Assembly: GCA_023334545.1 (NCBI GenBank)
Contig: JAADVB010000059.1
Span: forward strand, 19,524 to 83,523
Origin: Salisapilia sapeloensis CBS 127946
Lineage: Eukaryota; Protista; Oomycota
Length of the DNA: 64,000 bases
Direction: 5' to 3'
Made by a program: the position numbers and the translations under genes. Shown here in pieces: positions 44,191-49,678 of this stretch. The first letter of the stretch is position 1. Every line of letters starts with the position of its first letter. The notes under the pieces were generated by a model, which saw nothing but the letters and a program-made list of their open reading frames with translations, was not told the origin of the DNA and made no database searches.

Positions 44191-44489
44191 AATGTTTTTA
44201 TATGAAACTAAGTATACTTCTTCAACATAACTTCAGCATACTATTATGTACATAAAACCTACTAATTAGCGCAAAACGCTATTAATTCATACTAAATTTG
44301 AATGGCTGCGCGTCGAGGCCGCTCGCGCCATTCGAGTTCATTTTCGAATTGACCAGCAAGGTAGCTAGTGCCTCACTTGTATGCGATGAAGACATCTATT
44401 AGAAATATTGTCAGATTAGAGTTGCTGAACAGGGGTAGTAGCCTGGTTGTCGAAAACTCTAATTCGGAGCATACTATACGTTTGTAGGA

Positions 44490-44555
44490 GGGAATGACGA
44501 GATTTATATAACTTACCATCTTTCGGGGCTGAGCCATTCCACCGGCGCTGATGGA
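44490..44555 (+). ncRNA. Probable box C/D snoRNA (snR39B/SNORD2-like) guiding 2'-O-methylation of an LSU rRNA G; ends approximate
   Basis: Box C-like ATGACGA 44494-44500; 13-nt ACCATCTTTCGGG (44515-44527), antisense to the conserved LSU segment CCCGAAAGAUGGU; CTGA at 44529-44532 and 44548-44551. Confidence 0.7.
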
Positions 44556-44607
44556 TATCTTGTATCACGGACCCTTAGAAGAAACCAATACACTGTTTAC
44601 GATTTTA

Positions 44608-47600
44608 TCATGTATTTGTTTGTGGCAATTCCTTCGCCTTATGAAAGTCTACTGCATCTAATCGGCAGCACCCGAGTATCCGTTCCGGTAACTCGTCTTC
44701 ACACTCTCCTTGCAACACGAACGAAACGTCCACGACTAGTTGAGGGCACTTGTCCAGCATCAAGTGGATTCCTCGCCTAGCAATGTATGAGAACTGATGG
44801 ACATCGACAACCACCTCGGTCGTCTTTTGACCAGTCTCCCCTTCCACGTGATAGATTCGATGCTGAGGTCTCGTCAGCACAGGCGTGGCATTATGACTCG
44901 TAAGCAGTCTCTTCGACATCCCTGATAAACCACACTCATCTTGGTTCGTGACTTGTGCAATGACTTTAAACCGGTCGGTCAATGACGTATCTTTCCCAGC
45001 ATGCACAAACTTTTTAAAAAGCTTCAGCTCCGGTGTCTTTGGATCCTCCAGCTCTGCACAGATATCCTCCGGGATGCGCCAATACAACATGATACTGTAC
45101 CCTTCACCGTCACTATCGCTATCACTCCACATACTCGGACCGTACGACGGCAGCTGAGCATTGATGATAAAAAGTCGAGACTGCTGCAATTCCACTGGTA
45201 GTTCCATGCGCTGACTAAGTAGATCGACCTTTCTACTAGTCTTAAAGATATCTGCGCCAAGGAACTCGAACAGTGCTTCCGAAGACTTTTGCTTCTTCCT
45301 CGATTTCTTGTAATCGAGGCTGCGGACGTGGAAGGTGGTTCCTTCCGCATTCGACCACGCGTGCTGCACGCCACTTTTACGTCCGTCTTTCGTGCTCTCC
45401 GTTTGATCCATCGAGCTTTTCATGGTGAACTTGGCTACGTCCAAACCGATGGCGACAGGATCTTCCTTCTCCTCCTCTTTCCGGTGGAGACAGCACGACG
45501 ACGGGTCGACGCAGTCCGCAGCAGACGGATTGGCTGCACCGACAGCAGAACTCTTCTTCTGACAAGTACAGCACTTGCAAACAGCAGTATCAGTCCATCC
45601 AGGAGGGTGATAGACTGCAAAGACGAATGCTGCCGTCACGACGAGGCACACGAAGAGCTTACTAAGGATAGTCTGGTCATCAAAGAACTGCACTGCGATC
45701 GCATTCACCAAGAATCCTGCAATAAAACACTGCTGTGGTCCGTCCAACGTAAAGTGAAGTCGGAACCTAGCAGTAGGCGACACTGAAGAAGAGTAAAACG
45801 TAATGGACGGACGCCTTTCTAACGTCGGCCTACTCTCCTTGTCATCTTCACTCGCACTACTGCTAGGCACACGTGATATGGGCACTTCGTGCATCCGCTC
45901 TTCCCTCTTCTTTTGCAACTGTTCTTTAAAAAGCTGTTGGTGTGGCACAGCAGGAGTCGCTTCTCCTGAATCCAAATGCTTGCGATTAATCGCCTCTGCT
46001 ATGGCAGTTGTCCACAGGTTAAAGTCGTGTTCATTCTCCGCACAGAGTTTGTACTTGACACCTCGTTTCGAGTCAAAGTCTTTCAGCGACAGTGTCGACA
46101 CTTGAAAGAAAAAGTCGGTCGGTGCATTTCGTGCCAAGGATTTTTCAAACAAGAGCGACACACTTTTCTGGTTCAAGTCCATCTCGTCACGAAACCAATG
46201 ATGGGATGTGTTCACGTACAAGAGACCATGGGACTTTCGTCGCATCTCCTCCGTCGTCGCTTTCGCTTCCTTCTTCTCGGACATTTCGTGAGACTGCACG
46301 TCCGGATCGTCATCAGATGATGAACTGTTCTCTCTTTCAACTTGTCCAGTCGGTTGCGTCTTCATCTTGTCAGGTGAATTGACGTCATCCATATGAACAA
46401 TGTTACCTCGAGGTGTCCTACTAATGTGTTCCGCCGGATTATGACGGTAGTACGACAGCATACCACGTTGTCGATCCAAGACAAACCATCGACGGTTCCA
46501 CGACCTCTTCGAAAACTTGCCGTCACTTACTTTATGTAAGTATCCACAGACGTAGTCTCGATTGGCCTGCGACTCGTTTGAAAACAAGAAACCAGCGGCT
46601 AATAGCTGTGACGATGTCGTTGGATGCTGCACTGGCGGTGCGGAAGAGTGTAGTAGATGTCGCCCAGCACTTCCAACTTTACCGACTGCTTTGCCAATAT
46701 TCTTGCCAACTTTCTGCACACCACTCGTGCGTCGACCTTTATCTTTCATCTTCGAAGGGTCTTGTGGAAAGACAGAAGTCGACTTGTTCGCATCGGCATG
46801 CTCCCCTGTTTGGGAATCCAAACTCGAAGACCGACGGGCACGAGCCTCTTGGCCCTCCACGGCATGTATCGGACTATCACCAGGCGCTGAGATCTCATCC
46901 GAGTCGTACAAGTCGTCCGAGTCTTCACCACTGTCTTCACCGCCAAGAAACTCAAAGCTTGCAAATGCACTCTGGGACATTGCATCCTTGCCTTCTCGAA
47001 AGGATGGACTGTTCTTGAACGGATCTCTATGGTTTTAGTAAGTACATGCCGTGATGGATGAGATGGAGTCGCTTACACGTCTGAGCCGGTGCTGTTTCGA
47101 CGGTTCTGGTATCGAGGACTTGATGGAGCTGGCGAAGGAGGAAATTTTGACACAATGAACTATCCAGAGATGACATTAAGAGCGAGGATGACGACAAGGG
47201 TGAGAGTATGGTACATTCATGGCAACCGAGTACTGATGAACCCAAATGACAAAGTCTGTGTACGTGAGCAAGTCGTCTTCTTTGGACGACTGCTCGTCAA
47301 ACGCATCATACAGTTTCTATATTATAAAGCTAAGTACATGATGGATTGGCATATATATATACTACGAGTACCTTGGGGACATTGTTAAACTGCTTCGCAT
47401 ACTGCAATAACGCAGTGTAATTCGTCTTTGAAATTGCAGGCTCTCCATTTCTACAGAATTTGTCGTATTAGATGATAATTGTGATAGGATCCAGATAAAT
47501 AAATATACCTTTCAGAGCCAAAAGCAATGCTGTACATGGAAAAGAGATAGTGCAGTCGGTCTTCTGTATTCCCACTATCATTCTGATTAGGTAGGGTGTT

Positions 47601-48114
47601 CTGCTATATCAAATAATGAAGTGTACGCGTAGGTCCTCGCTAAAACGGTAGTGAACAATTCAACCGGGATGTACTCGCTTTTCGACTTTTCAAAGTGCTC
47701 CATCGTTGCATCTGCAGTATGCATTTTCCATTGCGTAGTGCATCTCGTTAGTACTGTGCTACTATAGAGTATCTTTGATTCTATCTACCTCCAAAGAGTC
47801 CTCGTAAAAGCTTCGACGAGACAAGATCAGCCTTCCGAGCAGCATACCGTCCATCTTTCTCCGTCACAGCATCACTCTACCACCCGACATCAATACAACA
47901 TCTCATAATTCATCTCATAAAGCTCTTTATCACCTTAAAAGTAAGCCATGCCACCGTAAATTCACTACTGTCGACTGCAAATCGACGATTATACCACACA
48001 AGTCCATAATAGCAATGAGTACGATCATTTAAAAGGGGTCCATATGCATTCGAGTAAGAGGATTTAATTACAATGGCGGTAGAAAGGTCGAGGGGAGGAT
48101 GCGACGACTCCCAT
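44608..48114 (-). CDS. MGxxxS EF-hand-like domain + PH + hydrophobic hairpin + EDR2_C (DUF1336) protein, ~1001 aa; exons 48114-48072, 47974-47934, 47876-47789, 47711-47627, 47574-47509, 47450-47372, 47316-47215, 47159-47077, 47026-44608
   Basis: Eight canonical GT-AG introns (50-97 nt) keep one frame into the 790-aa ORF. PH: CGYLHK...WNRRWFVL...LSYY...WTTAI. EDR2_C: WSNAEGTTFHVRSLDY, DRFKVI, NATPVLTRPQH, VDVHQF, ELPERILGC. Confidence 0.82.
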
Positions 48115-48262
48115 ATCTCAATATGGTCAGTGCCCTTTTACGTTGTGAATGAACTCTTTTTATCAAGAAGATGCTTAAAACCATTAATTCGGAATAGAAT
48201 TGCTACCTGGGTTACTACTACGCCCAGCACCTCGAAGCATACGCTCTTCTTACTCGTCCTAC

Positions 48263-49678
48263 CTATGGATGATAGATACGCACTTTTGCATCACGGGATG
48301 CAGTCCAGATACGATTTGTGCGCAGGCCGACAGACACGTCGCGAATGGCTTCGTACACTGGTCCAGTAAGTGTCTTGCGAATGCCTCCTTGCTTGTCCTC
48401 TGGATTATATAGAGACCGATTCCAATTGCAAACGCTTCCATCACCATGAGCTGTCCAGACCATCCCATCGCCATCACTTGGAGTGATAGAATGGATAGAG
48501 GCTGCACTACGAGAGACGCATTGCACAGGAGATCTACAGACAGCGTGAGTGTTGGACGCTGTAAAGAGATGAGAGCACGTACGACGCATGACGGAGATCC
48601 CAAGCACTCAATATGCCATTTTCGCTACCTGTGAAGATCAGGTGCTGGTTACCACTTGCAATGCTAGCAATGGAGTCTGTTCCTGGCAGTCGCAAAATCT
48701 TTTCACGCGACCGAATATCGATACCAACAGCTTCGCCTCTGGAAGTACCCACAAACGCGACCTTACCTTCCGTTTCAGCTTCTGATGCATCCTTTTGCGC
48801 ATCATTTTCAGACGCAATCAGATAACCAGAGTCAGATAGTACAGTCATGCATTGAAGTGCATCGCCTTCAGCCCACGATGCCACTACGCTCTGGTCACCC
48901 ACGTTCCATAGATGCATATATCCATCGTTCGCACATGCTGTCAAACACTTTAGTACTCATTTGTTGTAAATACAAAAGCATGCTTACACAAAACATTTCG
49001 GCCGCGACCTAGGATCGCAAGGTCCGAGATACCGCCACGATGGCCTTTCAAGGTAGCTGCACAAGTTCCGTTTTCAGCACTCCAAACGCGGAGAGTGAAA
49101 TCCAATGAGCCAGATAGTAAAACTTTAGAGCTAGGAAAGAATGACAGGCTGCTGATATCAAGCAAGTGTCCTTTTAATGGACGCAAGTGAGGTTCCGTCG
49201 AAGCTGCATCAGATCCATGGGATGGTGTCATTGCATCGAAAATAGCTGCAAAGCCATTATTTCCTCCAATGGCAGAAAACCGCTCATCCTTTGATAGAGC
49301 TAGTGCATGCAGCTGAGAAGTGTGGCTGGATAAATCAATGCAGTCAGTCGGAGCCTGGAAGTCCGTGCCGATTGTGCAGGTCTCGGCAGCACCATCCGCT
49401 TTTACGTCCGCAGAGAGCGCAACTGAATTACCATCTTCACTGCGTCTCGATACCAACACATTCACATGTTCTTTCGTGTCTGTATTATGCGTAGAGAATT
49501 CATGCGGAAGCTGGTCAGACAGACTCAGCTCCAGATGGGTGGAAGTGCTTGTCGTAGCCCGAGCTGATTGGGTCTCCTCGACCCATTCCACTTGTCTGCG
49601 TGATACATCCACCCAACATGCTTCACCTGACGGAGTACTTTCCCAATCAGGTTGCAGATGCAGATAGTATGGCTGCAT
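48263..49678 (-). CDS. PAAF1: Proteasomal ATPase-associated factor 1 (PAAF1/Rpn14 WD40 chaperone); multi-exon
   Basis: N-terminal LHLQPDW; LKGHLLDISSLSFFPSSKVLLSGSLDFTLRVWSAENG...LKGHRGGI...GRNV; C-terminal LTGPVYE...WTASRDAKVRIY. Confidence 0.85.

Follow-up and report, generated by a model that had tools for sequence, protein, structure and literature searches.

Does the apparently empty DNA upstream of a PH-EDR2_C open reading frame (ORF) in Salisapilia sapeloensis CBS 127946 belong to the same gene, and what does it encode? The locus lies in a window of 64,000 nucleotides (contig JAADVB010000059.1, positions 19,524 to 83,523), for which an initial annotation, made from the letters alone, had proposed a hidden N-terminal extension together with a built-in short isoform. 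All coordinates below are those of the window, and every feature lies on its minus strand. The EDR2_C domain (DUF1336) is widespread in plants, algae and stramenopiles and is tied to cell-death control in plants. We know of no biochemical activity for this domain.

Gene structure and transcript evidence

The sequence reads as one nine-exon gene from 48114 to 44608 with a 1001-codon open frame, that is, a protein of 1001 aa. Its exons occupy 48114-48072, 47974-47934, 47876-47789, 47711-47627, 47574-47509, 47450-47372, 47316-47215, 47159-47077 and 47026-44608; the first eight measure 43, 41, 88, 85, 66, 79, 102 and 83 nt, and all eight introns (50-97 nt) are of the GT..AG type. The joined frame holds every peptide quoted in the initial annotation. 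The MG start is fixed by an in-frame TGA at 48118-48120, two codons 5′ of the ATG at 48114, and the stop codon lies at 44608..44610. RNA contigs from three runs of the same organism (X1-X3) lack exactly these eight intervals, base for base, and one contig of 3324 nt spans 48138 to 44314. The minimum 5′ UTR, which contains no upstream ATG, is 48115..48138, as RNA contig X1 begins at 48138. Two junctions also occur in a relative that is ~96% identical (RNA run X5).

At the protein level, the 215-aa N-terminal part matches orthologues in blastp at E-values from 1e-57 to 1e-26, aligned from their residue 1. The Pythium oligandrum orthologue has the same lengths for its first eight exons, and introns sit at conserved positions in Pythium, Phytophthora, Aphanomyces and Achlya. 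Given the RNA, the blastp matches and the exon lengths shared with P. oligandrum, the exon structure is not a product of chance. The 47.0-48.1 kb region, "empty" at first sight, was correctly read as eight micro-exons in one frame: RNA contigs match all eight junctions, including the one (47026|47077, in runs X1-X3) that splices exon 8 in frame to the PH ORF. Positions 48138-44608 are a single, constitutively spliced nine-exon gene. A gene structure of this kind is in itself ordinary for eukaryotes.

The last intron deserves separate treatment. Intron 8 (47027..47076, phase 2, GTAAGC...TAG) is spliced in all RNA contigs. Translation reproduces the earlier prediction that its retention gives ...GSDV-stop and a product of 196 aa. 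Each of the eight introns, if retained, leads to a premature stop within 1-19 codons, and in intron 8 the immediate stop follows from the phase-2 GTAAG donor. An equivalent intron is found at the same position and in the same phase in four orthologues, those of Pythium, Phytophthora, Aphanomyces and Achlya. Read-through in three of the four (Pythium, Aphanomyces and Achlya) amounts to 16-24 codons; the retained-intron product is therefore not conserved. Across four runs, not one RNA contig includes intron 8, and the bin depth equals exon-only coverage, both at the contig level, where a rare form could escape. The only fact relevant to a short isoform is that the position of this intron, right after the EF domain, is kept across orthologues.

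Two other readings of the locus can be weighed on this evidence. The 790-codon ORF possesses an ATG of its own at 46980, and some public orthologue models (P0004, P0005 and P0010) carry no N-terminal part, as if there were two neighbouring genes, one for a small EF-hand protein and one for PH-EDR2_C; this arrangement is hardly credible, since in three runs all junctions are spanned by single RNA contigs, more than 15 species have full-length orthologue models, and the truncated models start within the EF domain and so look like annotation errors. Regulated retention of intron 8, which would yield a free, myristoylated NCS-like protein of 196 aa beside the full-length one, draws on the place of the intron exactly between the EF domain with its linker and the remainder of the protein, on the conservation of that position and phase in the four orthologues, and on the expectation that a last intron, when retained, would escape junction-dependent decay. 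We nevertheless consider such a switch very unlikely: the contigs leave 47027-47076 uncovered, a stop upon retention is a property of every intron and a by-product of the donor here, the product is not conserved in Pythium, Aphanomyces and Achlya, and a conserved DPLNxSPSxR motif directly past the junction argues that selection acts on the spliced form. The functional product would be the full-length spliced protein. The isoform switch had carried much of the interest originally attached to this locus, and it is now without support.

A divergent four-EF-hand domain at the N-terminus

Exons 1-8 with introns 1-7 (47077..48114, joined according to the RNA junctions) encode a predicted Ca-blind, NCS-like 4-EF-hand domain (approximately residues 15-180) followed by a Pro/Ser linker. 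The start codon opens the N-myristoylation consensus MGVVASS (48094..48114; Gly2, Ser6). The earlier reading of an MGxxxS signal agrees with PROSITE PS00008, a sequence consensus test passed by the window protein and by 18 of 19 orthologues; in the N-domain alignment of these 19, M1, G2 and S6 are nearly invariant.

Fold and structure searches were performed on an orthologue of 47% identity (P0008), and the profile was built from the 19-sequence alignment rather than from the window's own spliced sequence. Against PDB sequences, the profile matches GCAP1 (8.1e-7), hippocalcin (3.4e-5), KChIP2 (5.6e-5), neurocalcin (8.9e-5) and NCS-1 (4.3e-4). The AF2 model of P0008 has a core of pLDDT >85 with four helix-loop-helix units, whose loop strands are paired; the units are modelled as two EF-hand pairs, as in proteins of the NCS type. 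Foldseek returns 4-EF-hand proteins exclusively, at E-values of only ~1e-3, and the closest whole-domain resemblance is to Ca-free myristoylated NCS structures, with low global TM-scores of 0.3-0.47. By hhalign, the N-domain aligns with the EF modules of protist myristoyl-EF-PH-kinases over 161 columns (probability 99.1%, E 8e-19). The agreement of profile matches, hhalign, AF2 model and Foldseek upholds the NCS/calcineurin-B-like fold that had been proposed: as judged from profiles and model, the domain is a genuine 4-EF-hand module, though a degenerate one, with homology to the NCS/GCAP/KChIP class. It adds to the NCS-like EF-hand superfamily an unannotated branch, predicted to be Ca-blind, that Pfam misses entirely; its EF-hand models report nothing for the N-domains of six orthologues, even at E<=10.

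With the NCS class (recoverin, NCS-1/frequenin, hippocalcin, GCAP and KChIP, and also CBL, CIB and calcineurin B) the module has in common the MGxxxS signal, a length of ~180 residues and four EF-hand units in two lobes, and over the whole domain its structure comes closest to forms that are free of Ca and sequester the myristate. NCS proteins, however, stand alone at ~190-200 aa and normally have at least two canonical Ca2+ loops (EF2 and EF3, sometimes EF4), whereas the module described here has no canonical loop and forms the first fifth of a 1001-aa protein, with 800 further residues in the same mRNA and frame. In Peronosporales sequences, hhalign also shows additional residues immediately ahead of the EF3 loop. 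Leaving the orthologues aside, the N-domain is closest in sequence to the myristoyl-4-EF-hand-PH-Ser/Thr kinases in transcriptomes of Cantina, Aplanochytrium and Pigoraptor. These have the same order of MG start, 4-EF module, linker and PH, but their own EF2-EF4 loops are canonical (with Pfam EF-hand_1 matches) and they end in a protein kinase instead of a hairpin and EDR2_C. A blastp comparison of the window protein's PH domain with those of the kinases, made with the origin of the EF-PH pair in mind, shows no specific similarity.

The loops themselves were read by eye at ligand positions 1/3/5/12, guided by the hhalign alignment of the orthologue profile. In the window protein, these positions are E,S,S,L in EF2, E,N,E,N in EF3 and S,K,D,D in EF4; EF3 has the canonical loop length of 12 residues and a Pro at position 6. 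The PROSITE EF loop pattern PS00018 finds no match in the window protein nor in 18 of the 19 orthologues, the one exception being EF3 of the Aphanomyces euteiches orthologue, DRNDDGAISSVDL. That the Ca loops are degenerate, as first suspected, is borne out by this absence and by the loss of ligands in EF2, EF3 and EF4. The Salisapilia N-domain is predicted to be Ca-blind, as no loop has canonical Ca-ligand geometry; residual metal binding may persist in some lineages, given the A. euteiches EF3.

Linker, PH domain, hairpin and EDR2_C

The EF and PH domains are separated by a disordered linker of ~150 residues that contains two motifs. DPFKNSPSFR (46996..47025; family consensus DPLNxSPS[CF]R) lies directly past the exon 8/9 junction, and its S205, P206 and S207 are invariant or nearly so in the alignment of 19 orthologues. 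A conserved acidic motif, ASFEFLGGEDSGEDSDDLYDSDE, follows at 46894..46962; the orthologue alignment defines its core as SF[DE]x[ILV]GG[ED][DS]S, which is present in all orders. The stretch DLYDSDE was considered as an FFAT-like (VAP-binding) motif and rejected: it has Leu at position 2, where an EFFDAxE-like core needs Phe/Tyr, and its Tyr is missing from every one of the five Saprolegniales orthologues as well as from P0023 and P0025 of the Peronosporales.

Upstream of EDR2_C, as in the EDR2 family, stands a split PH domain (residues 352-550, 45964..46560) with a ~75-residue insertion of low model confidence. Its WNRRWFVL...LSYY segment may resemble PH domains of the OSBP/FAPP type; phmmer against the PDB gives weak, generic matches, all with E>0.01, and structural comparison is likewise non-specific. 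After a further linker of ~75 residues comes a hydrophobic helical hairpin (residues 624-670, 45604..45744), in which the short polar turn DDQT connects two helices. In the AF2 model, these helices span 415-431 and 438-457 of the 790-aa ORF (17 and 20 residues, pLDDT 70-84). No other 17-residue stretches have a mean Kyte-Doolittle hydropathy >1.5, and the first segment is only moderately hydrophobic (mean 1.1-1.7). The two hydrophobic segments noticed earlier between PH and EDR2_C are accordingly recovered by hydropathy, and the hairpin is conserved in 21 of 21 aligned orthologues. A Cys cluster, CKCCTC...CVDPSSCCLH (45484..45579), contains the nearly invariant family motif Cx5CCLH; C490, C496, C497 and H499 of the 790-aa ORF are kept in at least 90% of the aligned orthologues.

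The EDR2_C domain (PF07059/DUF1336, 44647..45357, Pfam E 1.9e-48) is matched over its full length, profile positions 1-213 of 213, scores 165.6 bits (cut-off 24.7), and is modelled at pLDDT 72-94. Its Atlas structural neighbours are all EDR2_C families, proteins outside the family reaching TM<=0.33. A search for a solved structural relative with Foldseek against the PDB and VIA-align, run on the 790-aa model, gave PH-domain matches and noise only. One paper calls the domain "related to galectins" (PMC3261905), another "viral capsid-like" (PMC8947239).

Plant ENHANCED DISEASE RESISTANCE 2 (PH-START-EDR2_C) resembles the oomycete protein in having PH ahead of a full-length EDR2_C, and the oomycete protein, too, is likely to act at membranes. 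In place of its START domain, the oomycete protein has the hairpin and Cys cluster; no START match is found between PH and EDR2_C at E<=0.1, and in the AF2 model this stretch is made up of the two-helix hairpin and disordered sequence only. The oomycete protein further adds the predicted-myristoylated EF module at the N-terminus, and it has no convincing counterpart of the FFAT-like motif described in plant EDR2 proteins (PMC3261905). Diatom and other algal proteins of the PH-EDR2_C and EDR2_C-only types have, according to the Atlas clusters, an EDR2_C of the same family.

The search for homologues found 41, every named one being an oomycete. Orthologues of Peronosporales, Pythiales, Albugo and Saprolegniales have the same N-domain with its MGxxxS start, and no profile match of the N-domain outside the oomycete orthologues has an EDR2_C. 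As far as searched, the EF-PH-hairpin-EDR2_C combination thus appears to be confined to oomycetes. It is not hidden in the sense first claimed, since the N-terminus is already present in public models of Phytophthora, Pythium, Saprolegnia, Aphanomyces and other orthologues. What is new is the EF-hand nature of the N-domain, previously unannotated in a protein family that is unstudied; no paper was found that mentions the orthologue locus tags or this architecture. The protein is a real new architectural variant within the EDR2_C family. As a practical point of annotation, the N-terminal micro-exons are cut off or mis-fused in several public oomycete gene sets.

Proposed membrane arrangement

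The 1001-aa protein carries, in order, a myristoylation consensus, a divergent 4-EF-hand module, a disordered linker with two motifs, a split PH domain, a hairpin with Cx5CCLH and EDR2_C. Together with the arrangement that follows, which is inferred, we consider this reading likely. The hairpin would embed the protein in a membrane with both termini cytosolic, while myristate and PH would provide two further weak lipid contacts for the N-terminal half, made either with that membrane or with one facing it. PI4P is a candidate ligand of the PH domain, since the PH of plant EDR2 binds this lipid; the plant protein is localised to ER, plasma membrane and endosomes (PMC1955445). EDR2_C could be the effector or partner-binding end, by analogy with a DUF1336-only plant protein, from pear, that binds ARF1 (PMC8947239). 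The EF module would most likely be a Ca-independent structural or partner-binding module, which may shield or present the myristate. Considered as a parts list, hairpin, PH and myristate are compatible with the three-anchor contact-site tether put forward in the initial annotation, a plausible but hypothetical role.

Two rival views concern how these parts work. The N-domain might sense Ca2+ (or Mg2+) through EF3 and operate a recoverin-like Ca2+-myristoyl switch: positions 1, 3 and 5 of the 12-residue EF3 loop carry acidic or amide residues, the A. euteiches orthologue passes PS00018, a position 12 Asp (D120) is invariant in the alignment of 19 orthologues, and the modelled domain looks like an NCS protein in its Ca-free state, with the myristate tucked in. 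This is unlikely in view of positions 6 and 12 of EF3 in the window protein (Pro and Asn), the lack of ligands in EF2 (Leu at position 12) and EF4 (Lys at position 3), and the failure of the Pfam EF-hand models even at E<=10; in NCS proteins, moreover, a single weak Ca2+ site rarely drives a switch. The other view dispenses with tethering between membranes and makes the protein either a scaffold on a single membrane or a hairpin protein of the lipid-droplet/monolayer type, with myristate, PH, hairpin and possibly S-acylated Cys on one surface and EDR2_C recruiting a partner such as an ARF GTPase. The short polar turn between two short helices of 17 and 20 residues fits a monotopic hairpin, the juxtamembrane CC motif suits S-acylation, the linker from PH to hairpin is only ~75 residues long, and the pear protein binds ARF1 (PMC8947239). 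On the other hand, the ~150-residue disordered EF-PH linker could span a contact-site gap, and plant EDR2, with its FFAT-like motif, is found on ER, plasma membrane and endosomes (PMC1955445, PMC3261905); sequence alone does not tell cis from trans binding. We regard the single-membrane arrangement as possible but doubtful.

A more specific version of the tether can be imagined, in which the Ca-blind NCS module of an oomycete-specific contact-site protein would act as a Ca-independent myristoyl switch, perhaps set by the linker motifs or by PH-PI4P binding, and would govern the bridging of two membranes by a hairpin-anchored EDR2_C effector; a minor intron-8-retained mRNA might then supply a free 196-aa regulatory copy. 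Taken as a whole, this scheme is quite unlikely. Oomycetes, among them major pathogens of crops and animals, keep one deeply conserved gene in which EDR2_C is combined with three recognisable devices for membrane binding; this offers a testable handle on the site and target of EDR2_C action.

Gene model and transcription

The PH/EDR2_C ORF spans 790 codons on the minus strand (44608-46980), and eight short exons can be read upstream of it. According to both sequence reading and RNA contigs, these minus-strand exons lie at 48114-48072 (exon 1), 47974-47934 (exon 2), 47876-47789 (exon 3), 47711-47627 (exon 4), 47574-47509 (exon 5), 47450-47372 (exon 6), 47316-47215 (exon 7) and 47159-47077 (exon 8), followed by the large exon 9 (47026-44608). 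Joined, the nine exons give 1001 open codons, a frame containing each of the peptides quoted in the initial annotation. All eight introns are GT..AG and 50-97 nt long; GC content is 0.28-0.39 in six of them versus 0.47 in exons, with intron 7 at 0.47 and intron 8 at 0.44. Since an in-frame TGA lies two codons 5' of the ATG at 48114, the placement of the MG start is not arbitrary.

Transcription of 44300-48500 of the window was examined with four public RNA data sets. In each of the three same-organism runs (X1-X3), one contig omits exactly all eight introns (47027-47076, 47160-47214, 47317-47371, 47451-47508, 47575-47626, 47712-47788, 47877-47933 and 47975-48071), one contig being 3324 nt long (48138 to 44314). 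The eight micro-exons are indeed spliced in frame to the PH ORF, as had been proposed, and every junction is found in these contigs, including the one across 47076-47027. X5, from a second organism (organism B, 2025 runs), is ~96% identical (range 95-99%) over window 44699-47830, differs mostly by transitions, and has the junctions of introns 8 and 3 in common with the window gene; hence, public transcriptome data exist for a close relative or strain. The window gene yields one mRNA and one protein, and its model is correct but ordinary.

As for the flanks, RNA in X1 runs ~290 nt beyond the stop codon (window 44314-44609), where X2 and X3 have short contigs of their own (44354-44595 and 44384-44609) at ~1.5-2x gene depth. 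On the plus strand, 44488-44576 matches a C/D-box snoRNA family of Rfam below threshold (SNORD96, 28.3 bits; gathering score 43; E 0.0023). Upstream on the same strand, a WD40-like ORF ends at 48263, and its RNA contigs stop at 48170-48184, ~30-45 nt from the contig start of the gene studied (48138), so the intergenic promoter region (48138-48172) is very compact.

Conservation of the N-terminus and its introns

The large ORF has 41 homologues, and every one with a named source comes from an oomycete (Phytophthora, Pythium, Globisporangium, Peronospora, Bremia, Hyaloperonospora, Albugo, Saprolegnia, Achlya, Thraustotheca and Aphanomyces). BLASTP puts their identity to the query at 35-47%, and orthologue alignment A2 at 38-53%. 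Most are ~1000-1140 aa with the same N-domain at the start; blastp of the first 215 residues of the window protein against orthologues gives E values of 1e-57 to 1e-26, with alignments beginning at residue 1. Orthologue N-termini read MGASAS, MGLSAS, MGSVSS, MGQVTS and similar, and the N-terminal PROSITE myristoylation pattern is passed by the window protein and 18 of 19 orthologues, in agreement with the consensus noted initially.

For intron comparison, four orthologues were mapped exactly to their own genomic loci. Exons 1-8 of Pythium oligandrum (43, 41, 88, 85, 66, 79, 102 and 83 nt) are identical in length to those of the window, and Phytophthora ramorum, Aphanomyces invadans and Achlya hypogyna have the same intron positions, save for a single intron lost in P. 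ramorum and a single one in A. hypogyna. The micro-exon arrangement therefore goes back to the oomycete ancestor. The N-terminus cannot be called hidden, as many public orthologue gene models already capture this structure. Some public models (P0004, P0005, P0014, P0028) are truncated and miss the N-terminal micro-exons, while P0019 and P0020 are fused to an upstream DUF4504 (PF14953) gene; the latter is conserved in the upstream position in Pythium and Phytophthora (loci L001 and L002, 132-1270) and is not in the window.

Retention of intron 8 does, as originally read, end the frame at ...GSDV-stop after 196 aa, and the position of this intron at a domain boundary is conserved, the sole point in favour of a designed switch to a short isoform. 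However, retention of any one of introns 1-7 likewise gives a stop, after 2-19 codons; the immediate stop in intron 8 is a consequence of the phase-2 exon end and GTAAG donor; read-through of the equivalent intron in Pythium, Aphanomyces and Achlya adds 16-24 codons; and a conserved motif begins directly 3' of the exon 8/9 junction. Furthermore, in each of X1-X3 the depth of the bin with intron 8 is 91/141 of contig depth, which is the exon-only fraction; therefore, no assembled contig in the four RNA data sets covers 47027-47076, a rare retained form lying beyond the contigs' reach. A built-in short isoform is thus very improbable.

The N-domain is an NCS-like EF-hand module

Pfam gives no match on the N-domain even at E<=10. 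A profile built from 19 orthologue N-domains (A1) matched only 4-EF-hand proteins among PDB sequences, over profile positions 55-178: GCAP1 (8.1e-7), hippocalcin (3.4e-5), KChIP2 (5.6e-5) and neurocalcin (8.9e-5), followed by NCS-1, calaxin, calcineurin B, CIB1 and recoverin. It had 102 matches in a set of 1.84 billion representative proteins. All 20 non-orthologue matches scanned are EF-hand proteins, and 16 of them, most of those checked with an MG start, have a 4-EF-hand, PH, Ser/Thr kinase architecture (P0057, P0067, P0070, P0072, P0081-P0084, P0094, P0096, P0098, P0099, P0104, P0118, P0119 and P0122), the known sources being the distant protists Cantina, Aplanochytrium and Pigoraptor. This architecture constitutes a widespread protist family. 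Its EF module (alignment A3) is the one most closely related to the oomycete N-domain, the profile-profile comparison of A1 with A3 by hhalign giving a probability of 99.1% (E 8e-19, 161 columns).

AlphaFold2 modelling of orthologue P0008 (residues 1-215, with A1; pLDDT 79, core >85) gives four helix-loop-helix units with loops paired via short strands, bearing out the suggested EF-hand-like fold. Foldseek with this model returns only NCS, CBL, CIB, calcineurin B, KChIP and GCAP proteins (probability 0.9-1.0, E ~1e-3, TM 0.3-0.47). Taken together, the profile, hhalign, AlphaFold2 and Foldseek results establish that the N-domain is homologous to the NCS-like EF-hand class.

The Ca loops are degenerate, as had been noted: the PROSITE EF-hand pattern finds no match in the window protein or in 18 of 19 orthologues, and matches 4 of 8 kinase relatives used as controls. 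By our own reading, with the hhalign alignment of the orthologue profile as guide, window loop positions 1/3/5/12 are E, S, S, L in EF2, E, N, E, N in EF3 (with Pro at position 6) and S, K, D, D in EF4; the EF1 loop is non-canonical in relatives as well. Judging from these residues, Ca binding is probably lost in the window protein. Across the family this loss may be incomplete, because the window EF3 loop keeps canonical length and that of the Aphanomyces euteiches orthologue P0033 (residues 105-117, DRNDDGAISSVDL) passes the PROSITE pattern, the only one of 19 to do so.

Linker, hairpin and proposed working

The disordered linker (46894-47025) has two short linear motifs conserved in all oomycete orders: DP[LF]xxSPS[CF]R (DPLNxSPS[CF]R), directly 3' of the exon 8/9 junction, and SF[DE]x[ILV]GG[ED][DS]S, inside an acidic tract and with an acidic, Ser-rich stretch after it. 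The F-x-x-[ILV] core of the second resembles an LIR/AIM in form. Pfam identifies PH and EDR2_C, the latter full-length (E 1.9e-48) and with no solved structural relative in the structure searches run. The two hydrophobic segments reported between them are the sole strongly hydrophobic stretches of the protein, and these helices, with a short polar turn between, are kept in every orthologue. C-terminal to this hairpin, 20-40 residues past it, is a nearly invariant Cx5CCLH (window 45484-45579), a candidate juxtamembrane S-acylation or metal site, with an additional CKCCTC in this species.

From N- to C-terminus, the protein comprises a myristoylation signal, an NCS-like module that is probably Ca-blind, a split PH, the hydrophobic hairpin with its Cys cluster, and EDR2_C. 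The hairpin would anchor it in the membrane with both ends cytosolic, while myristate and PH would supply further lipid contacts of low affinity, either on the same membrane (a cis multi-anchor scaffold) or on an apposed one (a trans tether), and EDR2_C would be the effector end. The plant literature serves as analogy only: the PH domain of plant EDR2 binds PI4P and the protein is located on ER, plasma membrane and endosomes (PMC1955445), and in pear, a protein with DUF1336 as its sole domain binds ARF1 (PMC8947239). An FFAT-like motif is present in plant EDR2 (PMC3261905), whereas the window protein's candidate, DLYDSDE, was rejected, with Leu at position 2 and the motif absent from Saprolegniales.

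A literature search found no paper treating the oomycete EF-PH-hairpin-EDR2_C family, and none of the other, non-orthologue matches to the N-domain profile carries EDR2_C. As far as searched, the combination is confined to oomycetes. This restriction is new. Also new are the identification of the N-domain as a degenerate NCS-like module and its relationship to the EF module of protist EF-PH-kinases. The protein adds a new architectural variant to the EDR2_C family and a divergent branch to the NCS-like EF-hand class.
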